A stretch of 64,000 nucleotides of DNA from Octopus sinensis (GCF_006345805.1 NC_043018.1:14198001-14262000); one strand, 5' to 3'. Positions 32,603 through 58,881 are shown, counted from the first letter of the stretch. Notes: a model not told the origin generated them from the sequence alone. Numbers and translations are program-made.

Positions 32603-32645
32603 GTGTATCTTTAAATGAATGCGCGAGCGCGGATATGTGTGTAAA

Positions 32646-32829
32646 TATAAAAAGAAAAAGGAAAGGAGTGCAAATTCAGAAAAACCAAAGGAAACGACAG
32701 CTGGAGCAAGCAAAGTTTGAAGCTGTTCACTGAATAACTAACACTACACAACCATCATCAACCAGTTTCAACTTTGCACCTGAGAAAGTCTACTGAGCTC
32801 TTTGTATAAATACCGTTGGAATCTAACAA
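32646..32829 (+). promoter_or_regulatory. Candidate TATA box, Inr and non-coding first exon of gene A (mirrored near 59755-59940 for B)
   Basis: TATAAAA at 32646, TCAG with the A at 32678 (32 nt spacing), donor-like aa|gtatgt at 32830. The acceptor just before the ATG exon implies an upstream UTR exon. Confidence 0.35.
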
Positions 32830-33701: not shown

Positions 33702-33765
33702 ATGAAAGGCATCAGTGTCCTATTGTTTTGTGTATTCATTTCATACACCTTCTCGGTTAAACAAA
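33702..33765 (+). CDS. Cys-rich secreted peptide gene A, coding exon 1 (signal peptide MKGISVLLFCVFISYTFSVKQ)
   Basis: Acceptor ttag|gtgcgtgATG at 33694/5. ATG at 33702, then 21 codons + 1 nt, then donor a|gtaagt at 33766 (phase 1). Basic N-terminus, hydrophobic core and small-residue cleavage region (TFS|VK). Confidence 0.85.
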
Positions 33766-34412
33766 GTAAGTATAATTGTAAATTTCTTTTATTTTATAAT
33801 AATGTGAAATGTAGTGGGGAAAAAAGGGGGAAAATAGAAAGGTGGAAAAGAGGAAAATGAATAACGCTACCTCAGCGGTCTTTCGGTTATACTCCATTTA
33901 TATGTTTTAACAGCTTTCAAATAAATAACTCACTTTTTATATACACTACTCTTAGACCGAGTATACGGATTTACGCTTCTTCTATATAATATATGACATT
34001 TAATTAACAATATAACTGACGAATCTTTTATATACAAATCGAGAAGAATTCTAGTGGTGTGCTCTCATCTGTTACTCCTGTATTTGATCAGAACGTAAGC
34101 ACGAACGCAATTCCTCTAAGCATATTTTGTCGAGCTAACGATTCTTTTCACACACGCCGCTGCTTTTAGAATTCTTCATTATTAAAATAATTAAGGGAAG
34201 AGAATCAGCAAATGATGTATATTATGTTTCATGTGTTGTTTTGTTTGTTTTCCTGCCATTCCTTTTTATTGCTCTTTATTGGTTTTTATCTCCTTTTATG
34301 TATTAAAAACATCCATCACTACAGAGATGAGCCATATTTAAGTGTATGAGTGAGGAAATTCGAGTTCCGGTCGTCATGATCCTCCATCTTGTTTCAGATG
34401 GTGTTACCATAA

Positions 34413-34619
34413 ATACATTCTCCTCTATTCAATGAATTATACATTATCCTCCATTTGATACATTCTCCTCTATTCAATGAATTATACATTATCCTCCATT
34501 TGATACATTCTCCTCTATTCAATGAATTATACATTATCCTCCATTTGATACATTCTCCTCTATTCAATGAATTATACATTATCCTCCATTTGATACATTC
34601 TCCTCTATTCAATGAATTA
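34413..34619. repeat. 45-bp minisatellite, about 4.6 perfect units (mirror 57964-58170)
   Basis: Unit atacattctcctctattcaatgaattatacattatcctccatttg. Confidence 0.95.
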
Positions 34620-34716
34620 CCTGTTGAGTGCTTCATGGGTATTTTGTGTATTTCCACACGAAATATCGGTAAATGGATATTTACTTCTTCCATATATATT
34701 TTAATATCTCTTTTAG

Positions 34717-34765
34717 ATGTCGCTCCCTTCCATCAAGAGATAGGTTTCAGGAGAGTAAATATGAG
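34717..34765 (+). CDS. Gene A coding exon 2 (pro-region (N)VAPFHQEIGFRRVNM(S))
   Basis: Pyrimidine tract ctcttttag|at at the start and ag|gtaaga at the end. The 49 nt exon runs phase 1 to phase 2, exactly bridging exons 1 and 3 in frame. Confidence 0.85.
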
Positions 34766-34809
34766 GTAAGAACAACATATGTACGTCTCATGCAAATGTA
34801 ATTAATTTA

Positions 34810-35176
34810 GTATTGGCAAGATAAGAAAATTCATTTTCGGCACTTGATGCTTTGGGAATCAGACAAAAATTGCTGCAGCTCGGCTGCGTATTCACTAGAT
34901 ATTGCTCCTTCGGATTTTCACTTATTTCTGTCCCTGCAGAATAGTCTTAATGGTAAAAATTTCAATTCCTTGGGTGACGTAAAAGGATACCTTGATGAAT
35001 TCTTTGCCATGAAACCACTTCAATTCTGGGAAGAGGGTATTTTCAAGTTAAATGATAGATGGAGATCATTGTGAAACAAAATGGTTCATATTTGGTTGAT
35101 TAAAAATGTAATGGGCAAGTATTTATTGACCTTTTTCTTTCCTTTAAAAGTCGGCACGAACATTCCGCACAACCCA
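34810..35176 (+). mobile_element. Same mariner derivative in intron 2 of gene A (mirror about 57408-57773)
   Basis: DIAPSDFHLFLSLQNSLNGK...EEGIFKL motif. 3' TIR gtcggcacgaacattccgcacaacccaa. Confidence 0.8.
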
Positions 35177-35399
35177 ACAGAAGCTGAAGCGTTGCAACAG
35201 TTGTCCAGTGTTACCATCCTCCTCTTTGGTTCCCAAAGAGATATTCATGCGAGCAAGACCGGAGATCTCTATGACAGTTTTTTCATTTTCTTGCCTGCTT
35301 CAAGTTATGTTATCCGACCGGTTATTTTTACATTGACAGATATTCTGATGTTAATATTCCACCAGCATTCGTTTCGTTGATGTCTATGTATGTATGTAA

Positions 35400-35850
35400 C
35401 AACAGGATTTCACTATATACATTCCAGGACAATCTTCCTACCGGAATGGCATTGTTTCTCTTGTGTTGGACACAACGTCGTGTCGCATAGGGCGGTAGTA
35501 CCTTGATATTTTTTGGTAGCTGTTGATCCTATGTGTGATGTCTTCAAAAGTAATAGGATATAATGGGGGAATAGAATGTCCACAATCAAGCGACACTGTT
35601 GCAAGTTTCCAACGGTTTTTCTTTCGTTCACTTCAAACAGTTGAGGTTTGTTTCTGAAAATCTGTTCCGGCCATCCCCACACTCGCTTCTTTTCACCTTC
35701 CTGTTCATCAGTCATCATGTCGTTGGACTCGAAATGGTAGTGAAGGAATGTGGCAGCATTCAGTTTGTGCATAATGTTTGCGCAAGAAATGAGTTAATAG
35801 CTTTCTGTAAACTCTGTGCTTTCATTCTGGGCTGCCGGCTTCGTTGTGTG
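35400..35850 (-). pseudogene. Highly degenerate R4/Dong-like relic (mirror about 56735-57185)
   Basis: EDITHRINSYQKISRYYRPMRHDVV resembles the knuckle-RHD region. Confidence 0.4.
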
Positions 35851-36559
35851 TCAATGTGACCTTCCACACACACACACACATACATAGGTGCAGGTGTGGC
35901 TGTGTGGTAACAAACTTGGTTCCAAAACACATGGTCCTCAGTTCAGTCCCACTGTGTGGTAACTTGGCATGTGTCTTCTGCTATAGCCTCAGACCAACCA
36001 AAGCCTTGTCAGTGGATTTTGTAGACAGAAACTGAAAGAAATGAATTGTATATATATATGTATATATAAATGTAAGTCTATGAGTGTGTCTTTGCGTTTC
36101 TCCCTCATCACTGATTCACAACTAGTGTTGGTTTATTTAAATCCCCATAACTTACTGGTGTCAGAAGAAACTGATAGAATAAGTACCAGGAATATCAAAA
36201 TAAAAAAACCGACTATGCAGTGTCTCATATTTTTGTTTGCCCAGTTGTATCTACCAATTTATCTTTGTGTGTGTGTGTGTGTATGTATGTATATATATGG
36301 ATTTCGTAGACAGGAACTGAAACAAATCAATCTTATATATATGTATGTATATATGTAAGTGTATGTGTCTGTCTTTGTCTCTGTGTTTCACCCTCATCAC
36401 TGCTTCACAACTGCTGTTCATTTATTTACATCCCTATAACTTATTGGTTTCACAAGAACAAACTAATAGGATAAGTACCAGGCTTATCAACATAAAAAAG
36501 CACTAGGCTGTGTCTCATATTTTTGTTTGCGCACTCAGTTGTATCTATCAATTTATCTT

Positions 36560-36608
<49 letters not shown>

Positions 36609-37879
36609 CACCCTAATGGCGGCCTTAACTCCCAAATTTTAGTCATGTCTTTTATGATCCAAAACTAGGTCAAAAGTACTGAATGGATATTTATGAAATT
36701 TGGATATTATATTCTATGCATAAGGGCCATAACCCCCATGATAATTCATATATTTTTGCTGTTGATAAAATTTTAACCGTAGATATTAGACACAACTGAA
36801 GTAATTTTTAAAAAATTTCATCTTCTTACAAGTTAGAAAGACCCCTCCATGGGGACTTTTGTCATTTTATCTAAGCAAAAACGAATACAGTTGTGCTCTT
36901 AGAAGCTGTATGGTTACCAGAGCATAAAAGATGAGCATTATTAGTAATTCAATGGTGCAAAAGTTTAACAGTTTGCTTTCACATACACTTACATCGTGAT
37001 TTCTGCAATGTGCTGCATAAATTGTCAAGTAAATGACAGGCATCTTTGCCTCCACTGATTCAGTTGCAAAGTGTTGAGTAAAGTTATTTGATTGCAGACC
37101 TCCTTTCAGTCATTTTATTACCACTGGGTCACACATAGTCCCCAGATGGTAACACTGATTTCAAGGCCATCCCAGATGAGTGACTTGTTATTCAGAGACA
37201 TTTATAGATTGCAAATTTATTCTGCCCAGTTACGTATCAGTGTAGTGGTCATTTGCAAACTCCAGAGGTGACATTTTCATTTCTCCTTAGCCCTCACGTC
37301 ACACTGTTGTTAATGTTTATTTCAGTTGGGTCACGCCCTTCCAATTGCTATAGATCCATAATGCATCTAACGGCTGTGCCTGTCACCTGGATGGTGAGAA
37401 AGCCTACTTTGGAAGTGGTAACGACTAGGGTAGGGTAGCTGATGCTTATTGTGATCATTCGTCTTTTCGTTTCCTGTAGCTTTACTGTCTTTTACAAACC
37501 CAGTGAACATATATTTCCTATTTCAAAGAAATTCAAACAATAGATATAAGACCCAAGTTAAAAAGATTCTCAACAATGCAACTTCTCTGCCTGACATTAA
37601 GACACCCACGCCCAACAGGGGCCTTAACTCTCACATTTTAGAGATCCATGATCTTCATTTTTCAGGAGCAAAATCCTTTTAACAGATTCGATAAGACTGG
37701 AATTTTGGAATATGCGCATAAAAATCAGTAGTATGGGAGACATGTAGCACGATTACAATTTTTTTAGGGTGTGTAAAGAGGGAAAGAACGCTCATCTGCA
37801 ATTTTGAAGAAATTCGAATCATAGGTATTCCAGTTCATTACAGAAAATATAACAGAAAAGTCTAATTCTTCAATTGCAT

Positions 37880-37912
37880 GTAACATGGGCAACGCCGGGT
37901 ATCTCTGCTAGT
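37880..37912 (+). mobile_element. Helitron-type 3' terminus in intron 2 (mirror about 54672-54703)
   Basis: gggcaacgccgggtatctctgCTAGt. Confidence 0.5.
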
Positions 37913-37954
37913 TTAATAATATTTTGTATTCTCTACTATATTTTGTATTTACAG

Positions 37955-38168
37955 TGAAATGTTGAAGAGAAGTTCATGTTCAAGAGGTCCATGTGCTGGT
38001 CACGGACCACATAAAAGATGTAGATGCTGCGCCGGTTACAACTGTATGAAACAAAGAGATTATTGCGCGTGTCGTAAAGATATGGCTGGTTCGGTTCACG
38101 TGACCAATAACATTATAGTCCAAACCGTAATCGCTTTTCTGGTTTTTTCTCGTAAATTTACCATCTAA
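37955..38168 (+). CDS. Gene A coding exon 3 (EMLKR|SSCSRGPCAGHGPHKRCRCCAGYNCMKQRDYCACRK plus 29-aa tail). Spliced product is 108 aa
   Basis: Acceptor ttttgtatttacag|t (phase 2). Corresponds to ORF 37959..38168. Dibasic KR followed by an 8-Cys domain, stop TAA. Confidence 0.85.
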
Positions 38169-38289
38169 TTGGCGTGCTGCTCTGGTGAAGTTTGAAGGTA
38201 AACTACAGACGTAAGATTGTTTTTATTGATGGCGGAAATCGATGAGAAGAAATGCAGACAAAACAGCAAAAATACACTCAACAAGATCA

Positions 38290-38925
38290 ACAACATGCTT
38301 CTACTACTTCTATCTTCCTCCACCCCCTCCTCATTCCCTCCACCCTACATCCTCCTCCTCCTCCTTCTCCTTCATCATCCTCATTCCCTCAATTCTTCCC
38401 CCTCCTCCTCTCCTTCCCATTCCTCCTCCCCCTCCTCCTCTTCCTATTTATCCTCCTCCTACACTTCCCCTTCATCCTCCTCATTCCTTCCGCACTTCCT
38501 CCTCCTACTCTCCATCCTCCTCCTCCCCTTCTCCTCTTCCCCTTCATCATCCTCATTCTCACCATTCTTCCCCCTATTCCTCTGCTTCCCCTTCATCCTC
38601 CGCATTCCCTCTACCCTTCATCCTCCTCCTTCTCTTCCTCTTCCTCCTCCTCCTACACTTCCCACTTCCTCCTCCTCCTCCTCCTCCCCACTTCCTCCTT
38701 TCCCCACTTCCTCCTTTCCCCACTTCCTCCTCCTCCCCTCTTCCTCCTCCTCTCCGCTTCCCTCCCCACTTCCTCCTACTCCTCCCCTCTTCCCCTTCAT
38801 CCTCCTCATTCCCTCCACCCTTCATCCTCCTCTTCCTCACAACCTCCTCCTCCCCACTTCCTCCTTTCCCCACTTCCTCCTTTTCCCCCTCTTCATCTCC
38901 TCCCCACTTCTTCCTCCTCTTATCT
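38290..38925. repeat. CT-rich low-complexity tract, arm A only
   Basis: (CCT/CTT) repeats with higher-order units. Confidence 0.95.
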
Positions 38926-39391
38926 AACCAATCGTGAGATCCTATGACAGTAGAAAACAACGAATAAATTTCATGGAACAGTGAAATATAAAACATTAAC
39001 GAGCAGAAGTTTGATTCTGTAATTTATCCTGGAGAGGAATTCACGTGCGTTGCACCAAGAACTGAAAATGGTTGAAAGAGAGAAAATCTGCAAACCATAA
39101 CTTACAACTGTGACTTTTCTTACAAACCCAACTTAATACGACGAATGTATTTAATATCTAATATATTTATGCTATTAATCCGTCAAATTTTAATGAAATT
39201 CCAATGAAATAAAAATATTAAAGCATCGCAAGTACTTGGTGTTTCGTTATTCGCTGTGCTATTTGTTTTTAAGCTATTGAAACGGTAAGAAAATATCAGT
39301 GCTTCGTTCTTCGCTGTGGTGTTGGCCTTTAAGTTATGGATATGGATGTTAAGATTTTACATTGCAAGTCACACAATATTATTGTAAAGAA

Positions 39392-39465
<74 letters not shown>

Positions 39466-39749
39466 GATGGAGTGGGAGGGAGCGATGGGCCACATACCCC
39501 AGAAATAATCATGTGCTCAGTCGCATCCCGCGGTGATGGGTGAGATGACGTAGCTGCAGAGAATGGCCAACGACCTTTGTTGCAGCTGCCACGCCACATC
39601 CCGTGTTGCACTTGGTTTGATGAGGATTTTTCTGTAATTCCTTGAAAGTCTCGTAAATTTTCTTGACAGAGGTTGCAATATTGTAGAAAAAATGTCAAAT
39701 AATGACACCCGCACATACATACACTTACACATGTATATATATATATAAA

Positions 39750-41600
39750 TGAAAGAATGGAGTCGAACGACGATTTTAACAGAATTTCTTTACTCTCGAC
39801 ACATGTTTCGAAGGCTGCATATTCCTAATTCCGAAGGAATAAAGGGTGCATTATGCCGCCATCTCATCAGGAAAGACAAGGAACTAATTCCAGCATCATG
39901 AAGAGCAAAAACTTTTAGATGACTGCCCACATGATGTCCACAGTAATAATGAGTGTTTCTTTAAAATCTCCCGTTATAAGCAATGACGTCAGAATTGGTT
40001 GGATGGAGAATGTTCTAAGGAGTTAAAGAGTTCAAATTTGGTTGGGAGGAGAAAGTTATAGGAAGGGGATAGAGTGCAAGCTGTATTGTATGGGGATGCG
40101 TGGGTGCATGCTATTGTTATGAGTTTCAGTGCTTGTGCGTGTGTATGTATATAACTGGATTTCTGCCTCTGGTGTGTGTGTGTGCGTGACTGTGTGTGTA
40201 GGGTGACAAATGTCAGAAACATTAGTAGTGAGGTGACAGATTTGTGTCGATTGTGGGTATGATAGAGAGAGAGAGATAGAGAGCGAGAGAGGAGGGGAGA
40301 TGCAGAGAGAAAGAGGAAAAAACATATCCCAACAAATTTAGTAGTAATTCTTCGTGTAACGCAGTAGAAAAAAGGAATTGTATATGGTGGTGTTGTAGAA
40401 GTGAAACTAAATTATTAAAATCAAAGAGGTTATCTATATTAACCATCATTCATATGAGTGAAAAGTATGTCTCTGCCAATGTTTACACTTATAGGATTTT
40501 TCTACAATTGTGTTTACCAAGGGGAATTTGGAGAAAAGGATAAAGAAGAGTTCGGAATTACAGATGCCACAGAATTTCCTGCCCTTATCAAAAGGAAAGG
40601 ATACAGATAATATGGATCAGTCCAGTTTGAAAGTTATATTGCTGTCCTTAAGACGCCAAACTAATTTACTTAGTCCTGTAGTATGCTGTTTTCTCTTATC
40701 TCGGAAAGTTGAATAATGATTGGAAATTCTCTGGAACAATCGAGAAGTTGTCGCGCCAATATAGAAGAAGACACCGGTAATGGAAGAAATCTTACACTGG
40801 TAAATGGAGTTTTTAATTTTGGAATTACTGGATAAGAACTTTAATCTATTAGGGTTTTCCTCCGAGATTAAAACGGAGTTTCTATTGTTCTGATTGCTGT
40901 TACCATTACTGCTAGCATTGATCACTACACTATTTCTATTATTGTTATTATTATTAGTTGTACTATCACCGGCAATATCTCTGACAATAGAAATGCTGTC
41001 GTTGTTACCATCAACACTACCCCTGTTATTAATCTGACTAATACTATTACTAATATTACCATTGTTAATACTAACGCTGTTACGAATGTTGCTATTATCA
41101 ATACTACCTCTATCATTACTATTGTATGTTTGGTTGAAATTGGTGAGAATAGTGTTGTAACTCCCGGGTGAAGAATCTTTGTTTAGCAGCTTATTATTAT
41201 GGGAGGCGATAATTTGTGAAAGATTTCTAGTGTTAGAGAATGCAATCCTTACCCTATGCGAATTGATAATCGAGTAATACCTAGAATCCCTGGCAAAGTT
41301 CTTAGCTACGGCTTTACGGAACTGTAAAGGAAGGTTTGATTTGATTTGCTTCCCGAAAGGTATAACAAACCAGATATAGTTTTTTGTGGATTTAGAAATG
41401 GTCATATTGCTACTATTGACAGTAAGGGGAAAATTTCTGTGTTGGAAATTTGGGGTTGTTTGTCTATTTCCTCCCCTGGTCCGTAAATTACTTTTCTTAT
41501 GTACAGGGGTGCCGAAATTGTTAGAGCTGGAATCATTATTCTCACTATACATAATCATTATTCACCTTCATCTTCACACGGAATCATCATCATCATCACC
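39750..41600 (-). mobile_element. Penelope-like element 3' part: GIY-YIG endonuclease ORF plus terminal repeat
   Basis: ORF 40617..41558 contains IWFVIPF...IYQCKI...FYIGAT...RISNH...LSKLVWRLK. After a TGA the frame continues SIL...CGIC, typical of PLE GIY-YIG domains. Hammerhead motif downstream. Confidence 0.75.
39793..39875 (-). ncRNA. Hammerhead ribozyme motif
   Basis: On the minus strand: ctttc-CTGATGA-[long stem II]-GAAA-c atgt g-TC-gagag. Stem I ctttc/gagag. Confidence 0.6.
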
Positions 41601-43016
41601 ACCACCACCAATTTTCTGTATATTATATGTGTTTTAAGTCCTGGTGTATTTGTTATGCATTTGCCTGAATATTTTTTTATCATGCCTAATGCACCTACTA
41701 TGATAGGAATTGTTTCTGTTTTTAGATTCCACATTCTGGTTACCTCCGTTTCCAGGTCTTTGTATTTTGAAAGTTTCTCCATTTCTTTTAGAGACACGTT
41801 GTCGCCTCCTCGTATTGATACATCAATTAGAAAGCATTTTCTTTTTCTTCATGATCTCTGACAACTATATCTGGTCTGTTGGCCTTAATTTCTCTATCTG
41901 TGTGTATTGGCATATCCCAGAGTATGGTTGCTTTCTCGTTTTCTGTGACCTTGTCTGGTGTGTGCCTATACCATCTTTTTTCTGTTGTTATTCCATAATG
42001 TTGGCATAACTTCCAGTGTATGTAGGTCCCAACTCTGTCGTGTCTGTGAATATATTCCTTCTTAGCCAGGACTGGGCAGCCAGATATAATATGATTTATT
42101 GTTTCTTGTCCATCTCCACATATTCTGCAGTTACTTGTTATATTTCTTTTCTGGTGGGAATTTCTGGTGGGGAGGCTTTGGTCTTGTGCTGCAATTAAAA
42201 ATCCCTCTGTCTCTGCTTTGAGTCCTGAGCTTCTCAACCATTGCTGGGATTTTTCTTTGTCTATTTCTTTTGCATTTAGTTTAGTCCAGTATTTGCCATG
42301 AAGGGGCTTTTCTTGCCATCGTTTTATCATGGTTCGTTGCTGTTCTAGTTTTAGTTTGGATTTTATTTGTTTTATAGCTTTTATTGTTTCTTCTTCTTCT
42401 TCTTCATCATCTTCTTCTTCTTCTTCTTCTCTTCTTCTTCTTCTTCTCTTCTTCTTCTTTCTTCTTCTTCTTCTTCTTCATCATCTTCTTCTTTTCTTCT
42501 TCTTCTTCCTCATTATCTTCTTCTTCTTTCTTCTTCTTCTTCTTCCTCATTATCTCCTTCTTCTTCTTCTTCTTCTTCTTCTACGTCTTCTTTTTCTTCT
42601 CTTCTTCTTCTTCTTTTTCTTCTTCTTCTTCTTCATATTGTTAGGTGGTATGATTTCTTTTTTTATTTGTCAGCTTCCTAAAATACTGAGAACAGTTTTT
42701 TGTTTTGCTCGTGTTTTGCCGCTATTTGTATCAGTTTTCCTTCTTTCTGAAGTAGATATTTTTGCAGTCCTATGGTGGTTATTTTATAGTAGTTTTCCAG
42801 CTGTATAAGGCCTCTACCACCTTCTATACGTTGTATATATTGTATATATAGCCTTTCTATGTCAGATTTTGAATGATGCATCCTAGATCCTGTCATTATA
42901 TTTCTTGTTTTCCTATCCATTTTGGTCAGTTCATTTAGTGTCCAGTTAAGGATATTGTAGCTGTAACTTATAACTGGGACAGCTAAAGTGTTAATACCTA
43001 TTATCTTGTTTTATTA

Positions 43017-43083
<67 letters not shown>

Positions 43084-43099
43084 GTTATTATTTCTTCCA

Positions 43100-44500
43100 C
43101 ACAGAATTATTTTTCTTTTTAGAATGCCGAAGGTAGTACTAGCCTACATTGTTTACAGGTAGCGTTACTAACTCATAGAGACCTGACAGAAATCCTACAA
43201 AAGGATTTATATTATTTTTCACACTGTGATGTTCAGTTCTGTGTTAGAGTCCCAGTTTTATCGAACAGTGTTGCTTCAGAAACTATTTTCAATAGAATTT
43301 ATATATTTTTCACTGTGTGTAGTTCAGTTCCTTTCCGACATTCTTACGAGCGTTCGTAACCTCGTTACCACTGTTATTACAACACCGTTATACAGCGGGA
43401 GATATTCTCGTCGCCACTGATATGTCCTACATTATGACAACGTATTCCGCCGCCTGCGTGACTGGCCCGTACGGCGTACCTCGCCGACTGACACTGCTTG
43501 CTGTGTCTGTCCACCATTTATCAGTAGTGGAACAGCCCACTTCTCACTTGGAGGTGTCCGCCACAACATGTATATACAATGAACTATCAACGAAAACTCA
43601 TAGACACACGCGACATAATAATCCAACTGTTTCTTCCAATCCTTTACAACACACTCGATCAAATAAGCAAAACAACAGATATAGGAATCAAGATGTTCTC
43701 TGGTTCAACTCGATTTTCGGTTCGCATGTTTCAACCAAGATCGCTGGAAAACTTTTGGACAAAGGTTTTCCTAAACCTAATCGGTATCATGCTATTTTTA
43801 ATAGGCTTACCGTGAAGGTCTCCTACGCTAACTCTGCTAATTTTGAGTAGCTTATGCATCGTATGAATAGCAAAATGCGACGAAGGTTCAATAACCCAAC
43901 CACTGGATCTAGCGAGCATACGCATCTGAATGCTAATAAAGGAGATCTAAACCGCAATGAAAAACACACCAGTTATGGCCAATAGTAGAAATACTATTGA
44001 TAGAGCTAACACGGTAACAACGTCGATAAATGGAGTCGGGACTGTCTTATATACAATTAAAAATGCGATAAATGCTCATGCAGAGAAAAATCAAAATGTC
44101 CATTGATGAATCTTTGTATGAGTACAAATCTTGTATATAAATGTACCGTGCTTACAAGGAGATGGCCGCGTGTTTACATTGAGCAGACGGCTGCTTCATT
44201 TATCGTAATCTTGTTGCCATCTTTAAGACAATCAATAAGACATCCTATATATTTGGCTGATTTTGTATGGTGACTGAAGGAGGATAAAATGAAGTACAGC
44301 ATATGCTGGTCCATAGTAAGGTACGCGAAACCATACAATATAATTTCCAGAAGATGCCGTCTCTGCTCCTACAAATCTCTGTCTAATTTGTGGACTAATG
44401 ACAAGACAATTAACAGACTTTCTGAAATACTCTCGAGATGCCTAGACGCATATGAATGTATTTTCGCAGAATGCAGGGGGAATGAACTTTGAGTAACTGC
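43100..44500 (+). mobile_element. Degenerate Penelope-like GIY-YIG relic (mirror about 19240-20630, -)
   Basis: VLWFNSIF...RYHAIFNRLTVKVSY and LADFVW.LKEDK..YSICWSI...Y...CRLC motifs, broken by stops. Confidence 0.65.
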
Positions 44501-45078
44501 TAACAGAATTTATTTTAAGGTATAGATGACTTAAGTTTACTTTTAACATCTCCATTCTTACAAACACAAAGTAGATAGTTAACTCGCTTTGTAATCATGA
44601 GCGCACCAAACCTCACGTGTACGTATGCTCACATTTCCGCGGATGCTTGTATGATCGAGTGTACTCGCACCATGCAGCTTGTCCGAGGACGTTAATACAT
44701 CCATATATGTTAACGGTTATTTCTAATAATTTCCTCGCTGTATTGCCTGTTCATTTCTCTTTTTTTTTTATCTGTGATTTCATTTTTCAACTTCTATGTA
44801 AATGAAGATATTTCCACCACCTGGCTACTTTTCCTTCTACAAAACGAGACGTTATATTGCGGAATTGTTCTTTAACGATTTGTGACTATTTATCACCCGA
44901 TGAGACACATCTGCACCACCGGATGCTTCTGAACCAGTTTTTGAGTGTCCCACCCTCAGGGTTCGATGGTAGATGTATGGAAACAATTGTCGTGATTAAT
45001 AAATTCTCGTATATTCTATTTTTCCGTCTTTCAGTTACCATATGTGTGTGTGTTGGCGTATACATATATATATATGTA

Positions 45079-45161
<83 letters not shown>

Positions 45162-45213
45162 GCATACATATATATATATGCATATATGTATTTATGTATG
45201 TATGTATGTATGT

Positions 45214-45251
<38 letters not shown>

Positions 45252-46129
45252 GTATGTGTGTGTGTATATATATATATATATGTGTGTGCGTATGTGTATG
45301 TATGTATGTATCTATGTATGTATAGGTATAACAGAAAGAAATGTAATTCCACGCAGGAAAATATATAGGAAGATTTCATTTCGGTTTGAAAAGGCACATG
45401 CATCTGAAAACTTGTGGTCGTTTTCAAATTTCGTATTAGATTTATCGAAATATCAAACTGTTTTCCACAATTTTTTGCTCATCAATTGTACCAATAAATA
45501 TACAAAATGTTTAGTAGAGTTTAAAGTTAGAAAGTAAAATTCGGAAAAACACGTTTCAACGAACAAATTTTCAAATATTCGCAAAAGTCTCAATGTGGTA
45601 CACAAGCGATGATATTCGGTGAAGATCCTAAAAATGCACATTATTTAAACTTCAGTCATATTGAGTTTATATTTTTAAAATATGTTGGGAAGGAAGTGAA
45701 AAAAATGGAGGGAGCGAAAAATGGTTGGTTAATGTTGACATTTTTACCCGGAAATTAAATCGAAACAAAAATAGTGCAACTTATGTAAAAAAAAAAGGCT
45801 TAGGAAACGAATATGAATCCCAAAATGCCCGGAAAGCAACGTTGGTGGGCAGAGGCCTCCGGAAAATCCCCAAAATCCGATGTTTTTCCCTCATAACGTT
45901 TTGGAAAGTGGGGTTTTTGAATGAAATTTTATACCTTTCAAACGGTATAGATTACGATTATAAAGAAATTTGTGAGGGTGGAAAGAGAAATTTGGAAAAT
46001 TCACAAGATCCGATGTTTTTCCCTCGTAACTTTGAGGAAGATATAATCCTTTTGGAATCACAAATTATGCTTTTTTTCGCTAACTTAAATGCTAAACATC
46101 CCTTTGAAGGGTTCGGGGCCTTACGTCAA

Positions 46130-46890
46130 CGGCACTGACAGCCTATGGAAGAAGTTTAAGGACAATAGAAATCAGGAGAGGCATCTTCCAAGGGGACTGC
46201 CTGTCCCCACTGATCTTTGTACTGTGCATGATACCACTAATACTGATTCTGAGGAAAGCAAAGGCTGGGTATGTATTCAAAAGCCGCCAACAAAATCTCA
46301 ACCACTTGTTATTCATGGATGACCTCAAACTTTATGGTAAAGATGAATCCCAAGTCAGTTCCGTCGTTGATACGATGTATAGTTTCAGTGCTGATATCAG
46401 AATGGAGCTGGTCTGAGAAAGTATGGTGTGTTAGTCTTGAAGAGAGGCAAAATCAAATGTATGGACGGGCTAGCGATACCGTTGAGGGACGTTATGAAAC
46501 AGATAGAAAAGACGGACTATACGTACTTGGGGACATTGGAAATGGATAAATTGATGGAGAAAGAAATGACAGAAAAACATAAGGTGGAGTACTTGTGCAG
46601 ACTGAGACTGATCCTTAAGTCGAAATTAAACGGACGGAATAAGATTGAATCTATCAACAACTGGGCGGTTTCATTCCTGAGATGTGGAGCAGAGGTAATC
46701 GCATGGAGAGTAGACGAACTAAACAGCATAGACAGAGAGAGATAAGGAAGTTGACGACTAGATATGGGATACTCCACCCAAAGAGCGACACAGACAGACT
46801 GCATGTATCAAGAAAAAGAAAGAGGGGGGAAGAGGACTTATTGGATGCAAACACAGCATTAGGGCAGAAGAAAACAACATTGCATAGTAT
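46130..46890 (+). mobile_element. R4/Dong-like RT fragment (mirror about 17330-18110, -)
   Basis: NHLLFMDDLKLYGK and YTYLG motifs, frameshifted. Confidence 0.75.
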
Positions 46891-47456
46891 GTAAAAAATG
46901 CCACAGAACCGCTTTTATTGGAAGAAGATCATGTTTATTTCATTCATTGTTGGCAATGTTCTCTGTCTGTCTGACCCTCTCTCTCTCTCACAGACACACA
47001 CGCGCGCGTACGACAATGCTTACAGAAGGGCTGCTAGACTGAAATCTCCATGTTGCTTTGAGGGAAAGGTAAAATTTTACAAACTACTTCTCCCTTTGCT
47101 GTTGGACTCGCGTGATGTTTGCTTAAAAAAAGAGATTATGACTGTGATAAAATAACGAAAGCAATACTTACTAAGCAAGTGAGCAGTATTATACAAAGAA
47201 AAAAATAGACGTAAAATTGTTAGACTTAGGAGCCAATGTGAGAATATTATCAAGGGGCTAATATCTGCTAATATATATCTATATACATACATACTACAGG
47301 AATCATTCAGTTCCTGTATACCAAATCCACTGACAAGGCTTTGGTCGGTCCGAGGATATAGTAGAAGAAACCTCCCCAAGGTACCACGCAGTGGCACTGA
47401 ACACGGACGCACGTTGCTGGGAATCAAGCTTTTTACCACACTGCCACTCATGCGCC

Positions 47457-47520
<64 letters not shown>

Positions 47521-47522
<2 letters not shown>

Positions 47523-50500
47523 GTAGTGGGTAGCGAACTTCTTCACTACTTCAGGGAGTGACGACCCTGCCTGACAAGAGTCCCGGGCTCTGCTGGCTCC
47601 GGCTGACAGTACCCAGTATGGGCCCCTATCCAGGGTTACGGAAAGGAGACAACCTTCGAAGAAATCCAGAGTGGAGCCCCGAAGGCGGTTTAGTGTTCAA
47701 CTCGACACTCTTCCGGCAGCTCCTGCAACCAAGCTGGTGCCAAACGTAATGCTCTGCACTCCTTTGGAATACATCAGCAAGGTCGAGAGAGGAAACCTGA
47801 CGATTGGGTTACCCAGGACTTTCTTATATCTAGCCCAGGCCTGCGCAAAACTGGAAAGGACACTTCAGTGCTGCTGTAGAAAGCTGCAGAAACAACACGG
47901 GAGGTAACAGTCACGTGTGATAAGTCCATTCAGATTGGCCTGCTTCATTGGGTGCTTGGAGCTAAGAGTATGGCTTGAAAAGCGGCCTGCAACCTCTGCA
48001 CCAGGCAAACAACTAAAAAACACAAGAAACCACCAGTCCTGCGGTTGGCTAGCTGGAATGTCAGAACCATGTGCTCTGGAATATCTGATGATCTACCCAG
48101 GGTTGAAGACACAAGGAAAACAGCCATCATTGACCGTGAACTAAAGAGGCTTAACATAGACATTGATGGGCTACAGGAGACAAGACTTCCCTCAAACGGC
48201 AAACTCAAAGAACAGGATTTCACCTTCTTTTGGCAGGGAAGCGATCCAGAAGAACCTCGTCATTATGGCGTTGGCTTTGCAGTGAGAAACTCATTACTCT
48301 CCTCAATAGAACCACCATCAGGAGGCACTGAGCGTATTCTCTCACTGCGCCTCTCGACTTCTTCTGGCTCAGTACATCTACTCAGCATCTATGCTCCCAC
48401 TCTCTACAGCTCAGAGGAGACCAAGGACCAGTTCTACAAAGATCTCAACTGTGTCATAAAAACTATACCAACAACTGAAAATATCTACCTTCTAGGGGAA
48501 TTTAACGCTCGCGTGGGATCTGACCATGATTCGTGGCCCATTTGTGTTGGACACTTTGGTATTGGCATTATGAATGACAATGGTCAGAGACTACTCTAAT
48601 TCTGCACATACCATAACCTGTGCCTCACAAACACATTCTTTACCAACAAGCCATCCCCCAAGGCATCTTGGAAACATCCAAGATCCCACCACTGGCATCA
48701 GCTGGATCTCATCATTACACGGAAATCCTTTCTGAATTCTGTTCTACAGACCCGCAGTTACCACAGCGCGGATTGTGACACAGACCACTCACTTATTAGA
48801 AGTAGGGTGAGGATTCTGCCTAAAAAAGTCCATCGCTCCAAAAAAGTGGGCCGACCACGCATTAATACTGCCAGAACCTCGGACCCTACACTGCGAAAAT
48901 GTTTTGCTGCTTCTATCAAGGTTGCCCTCAGTAGCTGCCCAACCTCCTCTGCTGAAGGTAGGTGGAATTATATCGGGGAAGCTTGTATACCACATCAATA
49001 GATACTTTCGGCATAAGAGAAAGGCAAAACCCAGATTGGTTCAATGCTGGGCTCTGAGAGCTGGAGCCAGTTATCGAAGCAAAGCGTGTAGCTCTGATGC
49101 AATACAAGAGTGATTCTTCTACAAAGTCACTCGAAGAACTCAGAAAGGCAAGAAATAAAACCCAACTGACAGCCAGACGCTGTGCAAATAGGTATTGGCA
49201 GGAAATCTGTCAGAGTATCCAGTCAGCAGCTGACAGGGGCGACACCCGTGGGATGTATGCCGGTTTGAAGAATGCCCTCGGTCCATCCGCAACCAAGTCG
49301 GCCCCTCTGAAAGCAACTACTGGAGATCTCATCAGGGATCAAAGCAATCAAATGGATAGATGGGTGGAGCACTACCAGGATCTCTACTCACGGGAGACTA
49401 CAGTAGCTGAGGCTGCAATCGAGAGTGTCAAGATCTTGCCAGTCATGTGCGAACTTGACAGTCCGTCATCTATAGCAGAGCTCACCAAGGCTATTGACTC
49501 CCTAGCAAGTAACAAGGCTCCGGGAAAAGACGGCATTCCCTCAGAGATCATCAAAGCCTGCAAAAACACCATCCTGCTTCGGCACGTTCATGAGCTTCTG
49601 TGTCTGTGCTGGGAAGAGGGTACAGTCCCTCAGGATATGCGGGATGCTAACATCATTACGCTCTACAAAAACAAATGTGACCGTGGTGATTGTAACAATT
49701 ACCGTGGAATATCTCTTCTAAGCACTGTTGGAAAGACCTTTGCTCGCGTTATCCTGGCCAGGCTACAACTACTTGCTTCTCGAATCTATCCAGAATCGCA
49801 GTGTGGCTTTAGAAGAAGCAGATCAACTATTGATATGATATTCTCCATACGCCAACTTCAGGAGAAGTCCAGAGAGCAGAAAATACCACTATATATGACC
49901 TTCATTGATCTAACAAAGGCCTTTGACTCGGTAAGTAGAAATGGCCTCTTCATCCTACTCCAAAAAATCTCCAAAGCTGCTGAGGATCATCAAGTCTTTC
50001 CATGATGATATGCAAGGCACCATACAGCACAATGGTTCAACACCAGCCGCCTTCCAAATAAAAAACGGGGTAAAGCAAGGTTGTGTCCTCGCTCCTACGT
50101 TATTTGGCATTTTCTTCTCGCTCTTGCTCTCCCATGCCTTTCAGACATGAGATGATGGAGTGTTTCTGCACTGTAGAAGTGACGGGAAATAGTTCAATCT
50201 CTCGCGCCTGCGTGCCAAGACAAAAATCAGAAACGTCCTGATCAAGGAGATGCTATTTGCTGATGATGCCGCTCTGGTATCACACACAGAAGAAGCCCTT
50301 CAAAGGCTCATTAACTGTTTTGAGCAAGCATGTAACGACTTTGGCTTAGCTATCAGCCTTAAGAGGACCAACATCATGGGTCAGGCTACATCGGACATCC
50401 CAAACATACATATTGGAGACCACAGATTACAGGAGGTGGAGAAGTTTACCTATCTTGGCTCTACCGTCACCTACAACCTATCTCTTGACGCTGAGCTCAA

Positions 50501-51281: not shown

Positions 51282-51291
51282 ATATATATAT

Positions 51292-51385
<94 letters not shown>

Positions 51386-53484: not shown

Positions 53485-53547
53485 TATATTATTTATATCT
53501 TAAAAATATTGTTTAAATATTTTTGATTATATTTTAGATATTTCAAT

Positions 53548-53616
53548 CACCTGAAGATTGACTGTAACCATAACTCGAATTATTACGAATTGGACAGACA
53601 TGAAACGATCGTAGTG
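53548..53616 (+). ncRNA. Hammerhead ribozyme motif in a Penelope-like terminal repeat
   Basis: cac-CTGAAGA-[tgactgt...acagaca]-GAAA-cgatcg-TA-gtg. Palindromic stem III (acgatcgt) as in dimerising minimal hammerheads. Confidence 0.7.
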
Positions 53617-53751
53617 TTTTAATCATTATCTTTTATTAATCTTTTAATACTTTTGATATATATTTAAAATAATTTAAATTAATTAATTTTCTGTATTGGC
53701 TTAAGTTTTTCATTGTTTGATTTGCCTAAAAGTGGTTTTATCTCTAATTTA

Positions 53752-53806
<55 letters not shown>

Positions 53807-54075
53807 GTGTGAGTGTATGTATGTGTGGGTTTCAATATTTGACATTTTTTCTACAATATTTCAAGAAAATGTACGAGATTTCGTGGTCGTCCAACTTTCA
53901 AGGAATTACAGAAAAATCCTCATCAAACCAAGTGCAACACGGGATGTGGCGTGGCAGCTGCAACAAAGGTCGTTGGCCATCCTCTGCAGCTACGTCATCT
54001 CACCAATCACCGCGGGATGCGACTGAGCACATGATTATTTCTGGGGTATGTGGCCCATCGCTCCCTCCCTCTCCA

Positions 54076-54137
<62 letters not shown>

Positions 54138-54493
54138 ACAATAATATTGTGTGACATTGCAATGTAAAATCTTAACATCCATATACATAATTTAAAGGCC
54201 AACATCACAGCGAAGAACGAAGCACTGAGATTTTCTTACCGTTTCAATAGATTAAAAACAAATAGCACAGCGAATAACGAAACACCAAGGACTTGCGATG
54301 CTTTAATATTTTTATTTCATTGGAATTTCATTAAAATTTGACGGATTAATAGCATAAATATATTAGATATTAAATACATTCGTCGTATTAAGTTGGGTTT
54401 GTAAGAAAAGTCACAGTTGTAAGTTAGGGTTTGCAGATTTTCTCTTCTTTTACCATTTTCAGTTCTTCGTATTAATACATTCGTCGTATTAAT

Positions 54494-54629
54494 TTAGGCC
54501 TTATATTTAACACACGAGCAATAATCTCTGGTTCGTATACACTCGTAACCGGGGCAGCATACACACCTTTTATTTGCTCCTTGACCCGCACATCCTCTTT
54601 TTAAACATGCACTTCTCTTAATCCTTGCA
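54494..54629 (-). CDS. Gene B coding exon 3 (ARIKR|SACLKRGCAGQGANKRCVCCPGYECIRTRDYCSCVKYKA*). Spliced product is 82 aa
   Basis: Same acceptor ttttgtatttacag|t. Hand translation of 136 nt gives an open frame with the same ungapped 8-Cys spacing as A and TAA at 54496-54494. Absent from the ORF track (no Met, under 60 aa). Confidence 0.85.
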
Positions 54630-55975
54630 CTGTAAATACAAAATATAGTAGAGAATACAAAATATTATTAAACTAGCAGAGATACCCGGCGTTGCTCGTG
54701 TTACATGCAATTGAAGAATTAGACTTTTCTGTTATATTTTCTGTAATGAACTGGAATACCTATGATTCGAATTTCTTCAAAATTGCAGATGAGCGTTCTT
54801 TCCCTCTTTACACACCCTAAAAAAATTGTAATCGTGCTACATGTCTCCCATACTACTGAATTTTATGCGCATATTCCAAAATTCCAGTCTTATCGAACCT
54901 GTTAAAAGGATTTTGCTCCTGAAAAATGAAGATCATGGAGCTCTAAAATGTGAAAGTTAAGGCCCCTGTTGGGCGTGGGTGTCTTAATGTCAAGCAGAGA
55001 AGTTGCATTGTTGAGAATCTTTTTAACTTGGGTCTTATATCTATTGTTTGAATTTCTTTGAAATAGGAAATATATGTTCACTGGGTTTGTAAAAGACAGT
55101 AAAGCTACAGGAAACGAAAAGACGAATGATCACAATAAGCGGTCAGCTACCCTACCCTAGTCGTTACCACTTCCAAAGTAGGCTTTCTCACGATCCAGGT
55201 GACAGGCACAGCCGTTAGATGCATTATGGATCTATAGCAATTGGAAGGGCGTGACCCAACTGAAATAAACATTAACAACTGTGTGACGTGAGGGCTAAGG
55301 AGAAATGAAAATGTCACCTCTGGAGTTTGCAAATGACCACTACACTGATACGTAACTGGGCAGAATAAATTTGCAATCTAAAACGTCTTTGAATAACAAG
55401 TCACTCATCTGGGAAGGCCTTGAAATCAGTGTTACCATCTGGGGACTATGTGTGACCCAGTGATAATAAAATGACTGAAAGTAGGTCTGCAATCAAATAA
55501 CTTTACTCAACACTTTGCAACTGAAGCAGTGGAGGCAAAGATGCCTCTCATTTAATTGACAATTTATGCAGCACATTACAGAAATAACAATGTAAGTGTA
55601 TGTGAAAGCAAACTGTTACACTTTTGCACCATTGAATTACTAATAATGCTCATCTTTTATGCTCTGGTAACCATACAGCTTCTAAGAGCACAACTGTATT
55701 CGTTTTTGCTTAGATAAAATGACAAAAGTCCCCATGGAGGGGTCTTTCTAACTTGTAAGAAGATGAAATTTTTTAAAAATTACTTCAGTTGTGTCTAATA
55801 TCTACGGTTAAAATTTTATCAACAGCAAAAATATATGAATTATCATGGGGGTTATGGCCCTTATGCATAGAATATAATATCCAAATTTCATAAATATCCA
55901 TTCAGTACTTTTGACCTAGTTTTGGATCATAAAAGACATGACTAAAATTTGGGAGTTAAGGCCGCCATTAGGGTG

Positions 55976-56024
<49 letters not shown>

Positions 56025-57817
56025 AAGATAAATTGATAGATACAACTGAGTGCGCAAACAAAAATATGAGACACAGCCTAGTGCTTTTTTATGTTGATAA
56101 GCCTGGTACTTATCCTATTAGTTTGTTCTTGTGAAACCAATAAGTTATAGGGATGTAAATAAATGAACAGCAGTTGTGAAGCAGTGATGAGGGTGAAACA
56201 CAGAGACAAAGACAGACACATACACTTACATATATACATACATATATATAAGATTGATTTGTTTCAGTTCCTGTCTACGAAATCCATATATATACATACA
56301 TACACACACACACACACAAAGATAAATTGGTAGATACAACTGGGCAAACAAAAATATGAGACACTGCATAGTCGGTTTTTTTATTTTGATATTCCTGGTA
56401 CTTATTCTATCAGTTTCTTCTGACACCAGTAAGTTATGGGGATTTAAATAAACCAACACTAGTTGTGAATCAGTGATGAGGGAGAAACGCAAAGACACAC
56501 TCATAGACTTACATTTATATATACATATATATATACAATTCATTTCTTTCAGTTTCTGTCTACAAAATCCACTGACAAGGCTTTGGTTGGTCTGAGGCTA
56601 TAGCAGAAGACACATGCCAAGTTACCACACAGTGGGACTGAACTGAGGACCATGTGTTTTGGAACCAAGTTTGTTACCACACAGCCACACCTGCACCTAT
56701 GTATGTGTGTGTGTGTGTGGAAGGTCACATTGACACACAACGAAGCCGGCAGCCCAGAATGAAAGCACAGAGTTTACAGAAAGCTATTGGCTCATTTCTT
56801 GCCCAAACATTATGCACAAACTGAATGCTGCCACATTCCTTCACTACCATTTCGAGTCCAACGACATGATGACTGATGAACAGGAAGGTGAAAAGAAGCG
56901 AGTGTGGGGATGGCCGGAACAGATTTTCAGAAACAAACCTCCACTGTTTGAAGTGAACGAAAGAAAAACCGTTGGAAACTTGCAACAGTATCGCTTGATT
57001 GTGGACATTCTATTCCCCCATTATATCCTATTACTTTTGAAGACATCACACATAGGATCAACAGCTACCAAAAAATATCAAGGTACTACCGCCCTATGCG
57101 ACACGACGTTGTGTCCAACACAAGAGAAACAATGCCATTCCGGTAGGAAGATTGTCCTGGAATGTATATAGTGAAATCCTGTTGTTACATACATACATAG
57201 ACATCAACGAAACGAATGCTGGTGGAATATTAACATCAGAATATCTGTCAATGTAAAAATAACCGGTCGGATAACATAACTTGAAGCAGGCAAGAAAATG
57301 AAAAAACTGTCATAGAGATCTCCGGTCTTGCTCGCATGAATATCTCTTTGGAAACCAAAGAGGAGGATGGTAACACTGGACAACTGTTGCAACGCTTCAG
57401 CTTCTGTTGGGTTGTGCGGAATGTTCGTGCCGACTTTTAAAGGAAGAAAAAGGTCAATAAATACTTGCCCATTACATTTTTAATCAACCAAATATGAACC
57501 ATTTTGTTTCACAATGATCTCCATCTATCATTTAACTTGAAAATACCCTCTTCCCAGAATTGAAGTGGTTTCATGGCAAAGAATTCATCAAGGTATCCTT
57601 TTACGTCACCCAAGGAATTGAAATTTTTACCATTAAGACTATTCTGCAGGGACAGAAATAAGTGAAAATCCGAAGGAGCAATATCTAGTGAATACGCAGC
57701 CGAGCTGCAGCAATTTTTGTCTGATTCCCAAAGCATCAAGTGCCGAAAATGAATTTTCTTATCTTGCCAATACTAAATTAATTACATTTGCATGAGACGT
57801 ACATATGTTGTTCTTAC

Positions 57818-57866
57818 CTCATATTTACTCTCCTGAAACCTATCTCTTGATGGAAGGGAGCGACAT
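57818..57866 (-). CDS. Gene B coding exon 2 (pro-region identical to A)
   Basis: Exact reverse complement of 34717-34765. Confidence 0.85.
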
Positions 57867-58817
57867 CTAAAAGAGATATTAAAATATATATGGAAGAAGT
57901 AAATATCCATTTACCGATATTTCGTGTGGAAATACACAAAATACCCATGAAGCACTCAACAGGTAATTCATTGAATAGAGGAGAATGTATCAAATGGAGG
58001 ATAATGTATAATTCATTGAATAGAGGAGAATGTATCAAATGGAGGATAATGTATAATTCATTGAATAGAGGAGAATGTATCAAATGGAGGATAATGTATA
58101 ATTCATTGAATAGAGGAGAATGTATCAAATGGAGGATAATGTATAATTCATTGAATAGAGGAGAATGTATTTATGGTAACACCATCTGAAACAAGATGGA
58201 GGATCATGACGACCGGAACTCGAATTTCCTCACTCATACACTTAAATATGGCTCATCTCTGTAGTGATGGATGTTTTTAATACATAAAAGGAGATAAAAA
58301 CCAATAAAGAGCAATAAAAAGGAATGGCAGGAAAACAAACAAAACAACACATGAAACATAATATACATCATTTGCTGATTCTCTTCCCTTAATTATTTTA
58401 ATAATGAAGAATTCTAAAAGCAGCGGCGTGTGTGAAAAGAATCGTTAGCTCGACAAAATATGCTTAGAGGAATTGCGTTCGTGCTTACGTTCTGATCAAA
58501 TACAGGAGTAACAGATGAGAGCACACCACTAGAATTCTTCTCGATTTGTATATAAAAGATTCGTCAGTTATATTGTTAATTAAATGTCATATATTATATA
58601 GAAGAAGCGTAAATCCGTATACTCGGTCTAAGAGTAGTGTATATAAAAAGTGAGTTATTTATTTGAAAGCTGTTAAAACATATAAATGGAGTATAACCGA
58701 AAGACCGCTGAGGTAGCGTTATTCATTTTCCTCTTTTCCACCTTTCTATTTTCCCCCTTTTTTCCCCACTACATTTCACATTATTATAAAATAAAAGAAA
58801 TTTACAATTATACTTAC

Positions 58818-58881
58818 TTTGTTTAACCGAGAAGGTGTATGAAATGAATACACAAAACAATAGGACACTGATGCCTTTCAT
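58818..58881 (-). CDS. Cys-rich secreted peptide gene B, coding exon 1 (signal peptide identical to A)
   Basis: Exact reverse complement of 33702-33765 with the same splice sites. Confidence 0.85.

Follow-up and report, generated by a model that had tools for sequence, protein, structure and literature searches.

Gene models at the locus

The 64,000-nt stretch of the Octopus sinensis genome considered here (GCF_006345805.1 NC_043018.1:14198001-14262000; "the window" denotes this stretch at its full length) contains two genes, termed A and B, that encode candidate precursors of small, cysteine-rich secretory peptides. Both gene models were obtained by direct reading and by translation of the joined exons. 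Gene A is located on the plus strand (33702-38168) and gene B on the minus strand (58881-54494); each has three exons that form an open frame once spliced, and all four introns have GT-AG borders and fall in phase 1 and then phase 2. The component parts are listed below, with E-values for exon 3 from the hidden Markov model (HMM) of the family described in the next section.

33702-33765, plus strand: gene A exon 1, ATG and signal peptide MKGISVLLFCVFISYTFSVKQ, with phase-1 donor gtaagt
34717-34765, plus strand: gene A exon 2, propeptide NVAPFHQEIGFRRVNM(S), with acceptor ttttag and phase-2 donor gtaaga
37955-38168 including the stop, plus strand: gene A exon 3 (family HMM, E=5e-29), with convertase site MLKR (to 37970), eight-cysteine (8-Cys) domain (37977-38072), tail (38088-38165) including a hydrophobic core (38112-38147), and stop codon (38166-38168)
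58818-58881, minus strand: gene B exon 1, identical to exon 1 of A at 64/64 positions
57818-57866, minus strand: gene B exon 2, identical to exon 2 of A at 49/49 positions
54494-54629 including the stop, minus strand: gene B exon 3 (family HMM, E=6e-11, profile positions 1-46 only), with furin-type site RIKR, 8-Cys domain (54607-54512), the ending ...VKYKA and stop codon (54496-54494), and no tail

The original prediction, made from the DNA before any database comparison, had proposed spliced GT-AG models with matching phases and a layout of signal peptide, propeptide, dibasic site and Cys-rich domain on a separate exon; these proposals were borne out, the translations of A and B are exactly as proposed, and the junctions of A (33765/34717 and 34765/37955) are correct; exon 3 of gene B starts at 54629. 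The translated product of B has 82 amino acids; its predicted mature peptide has 39 residues and a net charge of +6 (four lysines and four arginines against one aspartate and one glutamate), so that a residue count agrees with the predicted length and with the predicted charge of about +6. At the convertase site, B matches the furin-type motif perfectly (RIKR), and A reads MLKR; A also carries a C-terminal tail of 27 amino acids that ends in ...SRKFTI. A six-frame scan with the family HMM found exactly two exon-3 cassettes, those of A and B; no further cassette was found in the whole window, including the interval between the two genes. The HMM E-values, the exon plan shared with relatives, and Cys codons untouched by substitution mark A and B as real-looking three-exon genes, far beyond chance. 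With a probability of roughly 0.7, A and B are unannotated, convergently oriented paralogs within an octopus-only family of small Cys-rich secretory precursors, in which diversification is localized and the C-terminal tail can be lost.

Intron 1 of gene A includes a perfect 45-bp tandem repeat (4.6 copies, 100% matches, 34413-34619), which is mirrored in the arm that contains gene B.

An Octopus-restricted family

A word-index search with B recovered two "uncharacterized proteins" of Octopus bimaculoides that share its leader; a profile search retrieved at least seven "uncharacterized protein" products of the same species, and an HMMER profile scan of 1.84 billion cluster representatives added two hypothetical proteins of O. 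vulgaris (CAI9721905 and CAI9738754). No relatives outside the genus Octopus appeared in two word-index searches and the full HMMER scan of the 1.84 billion representatives; one further hit, a repeat protein of 647 aa (E=9e-5), reflects low-complexity CC-x-G-L repeats and was set aside. The exact A and B proteins are missing from a collection of 15 billion protein sequences that includes transcriptome-derived assemblies, and the two genes are therefore regarded as unannotated. A Pfam scan of A and B with E-values up to 10 gave no match, and hence neither a conotoxin family nor UPAR_LY6; no description of the family was found in the literature searched with sequence fragments, LOC numbers and topic terms. 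The earlier suggestion of a cephalopod peptide family that had not been recognized is upheld by the lack of a Pfam match or a published description, by the naming of all relatives as "uncharacterized", and by the exclusive origin of the homologs from Octopus. The notion of a singular hidden pair had to be abandoned, since A and B are members of a multigene family that was already predicted at NCBI in O. bimaculoides and O. vulgaris.

The O. bimaculoides members occupy two clusters on a single chromosome (CM046622.1), with LOC128250513, LOC128250514, LOC128250516, and LOC128250517 at 29.19-29.27 Mb and LOC128250536 and LOC128250541 at 36.38-36.41 Mb. Five loci from the two clusters, ca. 104 kb in total, were compared with the window; DNA identities ranged from 74 to 89%, without overlap, as would suit a further locus or a sister species. 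These loci hold nine full exon-3 cassettes and one partial cassette, all of which begin in the same phase with a T directly after tt[ag]cag; exon plan and acceptor are identical across 11 cassettes. The family precursor consists of exon 1 (64 nt, ending in phase 1), which encodes the predicted signal peptide MKGISVLLFCVFISYT.S; exon 2, a short propeptide with the motif VAPFHQ, which is present in A and its paralogs; and exon 3, which in most members opens with a [K/R]-x-K-R convertase site. The Cys domain of the O. bimaculoides members follows the pattern C-x4-C-x8-10-CC-x4-CxC-x5-6-CxC, and the columns C-x4-C...CC-x-G-x2-C are invariant throughout the family, A and B included.

Genes A and B share with these relatives the signal peptide, the VAPFHQ motif, the phase-1 and phase-2 introns, the acceptor ttacag followed by T, the eight cysteines and, as in most members, the K-R site; A resembles them also in its hydrophobic tail, and a convergent gene pair recurs at the LOC128250536 locus of O. 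bimaculoides. The exon 1 peptide is identical to that of LOC128250514 at 20 of 21 residues; promoter, exon 1, and early intron have ca. 81-82% DNA identity to four paralog loci, and the leader resembles that of O. bimaculoides more than that of O. vulgaris. In contrast to these similarities, exon 3 of A and B is just 26-43% identical to its O. bimaculoides and O. vulgaris relatives, and exon 2 is four codons shorter.

Several annotations of the relatives are irregular. At ca. 29.19-29.21 Mb of O. bimaculoides CM046622.1, a single exon 1/exon 2 unit precedes three exon-3 cassettes on the same strand, at 21.9, 22.8, and 26.9 kb within the compared stretch (unit span 10001-27101). NCBI isoforms of LOC128250516 and LOC128250541 combine different leaders and cassettes, which could reflect either alternative usage of terminal exons or lumped gene models. 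The O. vulgaris model CAI9721905 departs from the true exon 3 after ...CCNGYN and runs into a repeated element, LDSLPYQEEKVFRLCSQ, of which the OX597817.1 locus has four to five copies (positions 14850-14989 and 16523-16573 of the compared stretch are concerned); since the model exits exon 3 into this repeat, its full 8-Cys exon is mis-annotated. The second O. vulgaris protein, CAI9738754, is a fused model of 121 kb that spans several family units.

An inverted repeat with localized divergence in exon 3

Genes A and B face each other tail-to-tail within an inverted repeat of more than 10 kb, whose arms were delimited by self-comparison of the window.

28428-38086, plus strand: arm with gene A
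54498-64000, minus strand: arm with gene B, cut by the end of the window

Homology between the arms resumes beyond these limits at 39054-39750 and 54470-53787. The arms are 100% identical over most of the interval from 28.4 to 35.2 kb, and the kilobase upstream of the genes together with exon 1, intron 1, and exon 2 is identical at 2064 of 2064 bases. Intron 2 is 99.1% identical; mismatches rise only after ca. 36.9 kb, and the final 66 nt are again free of them (the last mismatch is at 37888). From the first base of exon 3, divergence jumps to 21%, with 11 mismatches within the first 40 nt. The Cys domain encoded by exon 3 is 79% identical between A and B, compared to 97% for the 3' flank, and exon 3 is eight times more diverged than either of its flanks (Fisher p=5e-12 and 6e-11). 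The identical 5' halves, from promoter to exon 2, would have arisen either by recent duplication or by gene conversion between the arms.

Non-synonymous (dN) and synonymous (dS) divergence were estimated with the Nei-Gojobori method for the 44 codons (132 nt) of exon 3 that run from the convertase site as far as homology extends. A and B differ here by 28.5 non-synonymous and 4.5 synonymous changes (dN 0.33, dS 0.20, ratio omega 1.7); none of the 33 nucleotide differences falls within the 24 positions of the Cys codons (p=4e-4), so that every one of the eight Cys codons is preserved. In the closest O. bimaculoides cassette pair, dN is 0.42 and dS 0.15 for the Cys domain, compared to dN 0.045 and dS 0 for the tail; in the sequence comparison, the pattern of a fast Cys domain thus recurs independently in this second pair. 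These observations suggest that the Cys domain is under diversifying selection and that its surroundings have been homogenized by recent duplication or gene conversion. The divergence of exon 3 may also derive from targeted exchange with an unseen third cassette; this possibility has to contend with the finding that, of the cassettes compared, none is closer to A than B, or to B than A.

A conserved C-terminal tail and its loss

The tail of A, which the original prediction had left without interpretation, ranks first in conservation among the elements of the family. Averaged over all cassette pairs, nucleotide identity within exon 3 is highest in the tail, at 72%; the Cys domain reaches 59%, no better than the flanking non-coding DNA (60-62%). 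The tail is present in nine of 11 full cassettes, including A, and follows the consensus ...SSQNxIHVxNNGIxQTVIAFLIFxVNLPSY; the occurrence of the same tail in the paralogs ruled out that the tail of A is an insertion artifact. After the last cysteine, ca. 12 polar residues lead to a hydrophobic core of 13 residues with a mean Kyte-Doolittle value of 2.4-2.9, which ends zero to five residues before the C-terminus; AlphaFold2 (AF2) draws the tail as a helix. Such an arrangement of a polar spacer and a terminal hydrophobic stretch suits a glycosylphosphatidylinositol (GPI) attachment signal or a short membrane anchor. The sequence of the tail suggests a GPI or transmembrane anchor; since the tail is both conserved and anchor-like, the default product of the family is probably associated with the membrane, and not a free venom peptide.

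Both window genes depart from the canonical tail. Gene A retains it up to ...QTVIAFLVF, where a short T-run is altered:

38143-38148, plus strand: T-run with one T more than in all seven O. bimaculoides paralogs compared, from DNA alignment and three-frame translation

Through the resulting +1 frameshift, LVNLPSY gives way in A to SRKFTI, which includes two basic residues; the alternative frame can still be read as the family ending, although its stop codon has mutated. The extra T may represent a real mutation or an assembly error in a homopolymer. In gene B, the tail is absent altogether, and comparison of the arms defines the segments that account for this difference.

38087-39053, plus strand: segment of 967 bp in arm A that is missing from arm B; it holds the tail coding region, 3' flank, and a TCC-rich expansion
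54471-54497, minus strand: 27 nt specific to B at the deletion junction, supplying its stop codon; a near-copy of sequence ca. 85 nt downstream
39054-39750, plus strand (partner 54470-53787): shared 3' flank, ca. 97% identical, with the landmark GAAAATCTGCAAACC (39082 in A, 54442 in B) and AATAAA signals (39208 in A, 54316 in B)

The alignments identify B as a derived, tail-deleted form, and the 27 nt at its junction as the signature of templated-insertion repair. The landmark GAAAATCTGCAAACC follows the stop codon after 914 nt in A and after 52 nt in B, compared to ca. 280 nt in a tailed O. bimaculoides cassette; B has accordingly lost the tail and ca. 230 nt or more of the 3' flank. The residues encoded past the stop codon of B were considered as a decayed tail; this was ruled out, because B from 54470 onward matches A from 39054 onward with 97% identity. 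The 3' flank of gene A only contains a low-complexity, TCC-rich expansion of ca. 570-600 nt (38350-38919), which yields long, spurious Ser/Pro/Leu open reading frames (ORFs) in three frames.

A second tail-less member was found in O. vulgaris (OX597817.1, 141.44 Mb), at a locus that is colinear with the window unit from the upstream region through the introns to the 3' flank. Its exon 3 has the standard 8-Cys pattern intact and no tail, and its stop codon abuts the GAAAATCTGCAAACC landmark. Since the tail-less genes of B and O. vulgaris have different junctions, tail loss has probably occurred twice; with these two members lacking it, the tail is typical of the family, not universal.

Cysteine framework and predicted fold

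The Cys pattern of A and B deviates from that of their relatives: the family arrangement CC-x4-CxC-x5-6-CxC is replaced by CxCC-x4-C-x6-CxC, in which the second cysteine of the first CxC (the sixth of the family pattern) is absent and a new cysteine stands two residues before the CC pair. This relocated-Cys arrangement is unique to A and B among the known members; the others have C-C-CC-CxC-CxC. The resulting order in A and B, C-C-C-CC-C-C-C, is that of conotoxin framework XIII and is due to the relocated cysteine; the earlier comparison with this framework holds for the order of cysteines in A and B and for nothing beyond it.

Read from the alignment, six core cysteines are ordered C-C-CC-C-C with loop lengths compatible with an inhibitor cystine knot (ICK). 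A profile of the Cys domain searched against the PDB sequences gave 16 matches, all of them ICK toxins, with non-significant E-values between 0.03 and 4; they include purotoxin-1 (E=0.03), conotoxin GS (E=0.11), pi-hexatoxin, psalmotoxin-1, delta-palutoxins, and mu-agatoxin-I. The sole match of a single-sequence PDB search was an ICK lectin (E=2.9). The AF2 model of the B domain (predicted local distance difference test, pLDDT, 71) contains a beta-hairpin, and its top Foldseek matches were J-atracotoxin-Hv1c and psalmotoxin-1, with template modeling (TM) scores of 0.55-0.64 and E-values above 1 (best 1.2); the model of the entire exon 3 of A (pLDDT 64.5) was left out of the fold search. The resemblance to knottins noted in the original prediction thus holds weakly: ICK toxins account for all 16 PDB matches, but the best E-value is 0.03 and the best Foldseek match has a TM-score of ca. 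0.62 at E>1.

The scaffold is consistent with a knottin-like peptide, although membership in this fold class is unproven. The O. bimaculoides members share the Cys order C-C-CC-CxC-CxC with the ICK peptides purotoxin-1, delta-palutoxins, mu-agatoxin-I, psalmotoxin-1, and J-atracotoxin-Hv1c; the octopus family and the ICK toxins also have in common a CC-x-G-[LY]-x-C motif and a predicted C-terminal beta-hairpin. They differ in loop lengths, and the toxins are without the hydrophobic C-terminal tail. As those toxins come from arthropods, convergence on a common scaffold is the more likely relation; the sequence comparisons lend no support to homology with arthropod or cone-snail toxins.

Alternative explanations

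The two genes could be decaying or silent copies, i.e., young pseudogenes whose frames are open only because they are recent. The conserved tail is abnormal in both: a deletion has removed it from B, and in A a +1 frameshift is accompanied by a mutated ancestral stop; neither was called by any annotation in the protein collection, although their paralogs were, and a TCC expansion of ca. 600 nt has accumulated in the 3' flank of A. Yet neither a stop nor a frameshift has arisen among the 33 substitutions over 132 nt of the Cys domain, whose eight Cys codons are unchanged (p=4e-4); every splice site and both convertase sites are intact, omega lies above 1 and not near 1 with random damage, and a tail-less but otherwise intact member exists in O. 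vulgaris. Decay is therefore the less plausible outcome for A and B, and we consider it unlikely. An assembly artifact, in which one locus or two haplotypes were written twice in inverted orientation, would account for several kb of 100% identity between the arms; the 100-N gap in the window and the continuation of arm B past the window end also fit such an explanation. However, no gap occurs between 15885 and 64000, which places both arms and the intervening 14-kb spacer on a single contig, and the differences between the arms are structured: mismatches follow a gradient, the 21% divergence is limited to exon 3, a 967-bp insertion/deletion has a templated junction, and microsatellites are unequal in length. 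A palindromic read artifact would produce neither the spacer nor these differences, and allelic divergence of 21% in a single exon is implausible; an artifact of either kind is highly improbable.

The precursors might also be classical genes for soluble venom or antimicrobial peptides, expressed in salivary gland or skin. The prepropeptide layout with its convertase site, the strongly cationic mature domains (ca. +6), and a Cys domain under apparent diversifying selection on an ICK-like scaffold all suit this interpretation, as does the gene plan: the conotoxin superfamilies I1, I2, M, O2, O3, P, S, and T are described as having three exons and conserved introns, with substitutions concentrated in the mature-peptide exon (PMC3862624), and the octopus family is likewise molluscan, with a signal/pro/mature exon plan, conserved introns, and a fast mature exon. 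The octopus precursors nevertheless originate from a cephalopod and not from Conus, have no Pfam conotoxin match (conotoxin GS alone appeared, at E=0.11), and possess a conserved hydrophobic tail unlike conotoxin precursors. This tail, found in nine of 11 full cassettes, is absent from soluble venom peptides. Charge is not conserved but varies across the family, the Cys domain of LOC128250516 X1 being net acidic by direct count; the supplements of a study of O. vulgaris salivary-gland peptides contain no family sequence, and ICK peptides were not linked to octopus venom in the literature searched. A soluble-peptide identity for the family is accordingly doubtful.

As a caveat, several points weigh against the preferred interpretation of A and B as functional, locally diversifying paralogs with a primarily tethered family background. 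The genes are predicted from sequence; their absence from the protein collection would count against them, yet it is uninformative, since the annotated paralogs are likewise without transcriptome-derived copies. The tails of both window genes are non-canonical, by frameshift in A and by deletion in B, which could mean decay. The omega estimate covers only 44 codons, and homogenization of the flanks may account for part of the contrast with exon 3, because dS of the exon (0.20) exceeds the divergence of the flanks. The anchor role of the tail was judged by eye; GPI geometry fits the paralogs on the same basis, with an omega+2 position that is not canonical. Finally, the knottin assignment is without statistical significance, and the structural models are of medium or low confidence.

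Other elements in the window

A scaffold gap of 100 N (15785-15884) is the only gap in the window; no N occurs between 15885 and 64000, and the sequence directly after the gap, from 15885, is the start of a long interspersed nuclear element (LINE) copy. Two inverted LINE-like retrotransposon copies (15885-21932 and 41610-50355) are 93-97% identical, and their broken ORFs match the Pfam families Exo_endo_phos and RVT_1; one of them makes up a large part of the spacer that separates A from B at their 3' ends. A LINE ORF of the window is 87% identical to an "uncharacterized protein" of O. bimaculoides, compared to 64% for O. sinensis; by this LINE similarity and the leader peptide, the window was placed in O. 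bimaculoides or a very close relative. This inverted pair (15885-21932 / 50355-41610) was considered as part of the gene duplication, and was ruled out by its endonuclease and reverse transcriptase (RT) domains. A second RT element (RVT_1, zf-RVT) fills the distal part of both arms, at 27498-29711 (minus strand) and 61716-63708 (plus strand); part of each arm is thus transposon sequence, and the arms probably continue past the window end.

Very AT-rich repeat blocks at 3594-3872, 13582-14094, 30645-31333, and 61095-61777 match each other at 84-93%. The 2-kb windows around the two blocks within the arms have a GC content of ca. 21-23%, and most small length differences between the arms are located at these two blocks. 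The spacer between the genes also contains an Asn/Ser-rich ORF of 313 aa (40617-41558, minus strand) with no match in Pfam.

Implications

A possible mode of action can be sketched from the precursor layout. The precursor would enter the endoplasmic reticulum, where the Cys domain would fold into a disulfide knot, and a furin-like convertase would cut off the pro-region; in typical members the tail, as a GPI-attachment signal or a short transmembrane anchor, would tether the knot to the membrane, and the hypervariable surface would bind a rapidly changing partner outside the cell, for instance a channel, receptor, or foreign surface. Gene B would release a free peptide of 39 residues with a charge of +6. 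We give this scheme of a tethered ligand with a soluble derivative slightly less than an even chance; a specific role of B in venom or host defense seems improbable at this stage.

A working analogy is provided by the Ly6/uPAR proteins: prototoxins such as lynx1 are described as having given rise to the three-finger toxins of snakes, with loss of the membrane-anchoring region leading to soluble forms with new functions (PMC10421932). The octopus precursors share with them a small disulfide-rich domain, a signal peptide, and a C-terminal anchor-like region, putative in the octopus case; they differ in that fold and Cys pattern are unrelated, the octopus domain is half the size, and UPAR_LY6 was not matched. 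By extension, octopuses may have evolved membrane-tethered knottin "prototoxins" under diversifying selection, from which free cationic peptides arose repeatedly by loss of the anchor, in B and independently in O. vulgaris. This scenario is speculative and probably goes too far; if true, it would constitute an invertebrate knottin parallel to the transition from Ly6 proteins to three-finger toxins, caught inside a gene-converting palindrome in which leaders and regulatory sequence are identical while the binding domain diversifies.

The venom and secretory peptide repertoires of cephalopods are poorly known, and the literature searched contained neither a knottin-type family tied to octopus nor ICK peptides tied to octopus venom. 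Against this background, the locus reveals a lineage-restricted, clustered, and rapidly diversifying family of Cys-knot-like peptides with a conotoxin-like exon plan, to which A and B add two new members that current annotation has missed and whose Cys framework is a variant one. Peptides of this kind do not usually have a conserved hydrophobic tail, and its presence suggests tethering to the membrane; natural tail-less derivatives exist. If expressed, B would be a 39-residue candidate ligand for channel or antimicrobial screens, and the family would offer a test case for the evolution of soluble toxins or signals from tethered precursors; the palindrome would be a case in which homogenization of the leader is combined with diversification of the binding exon.

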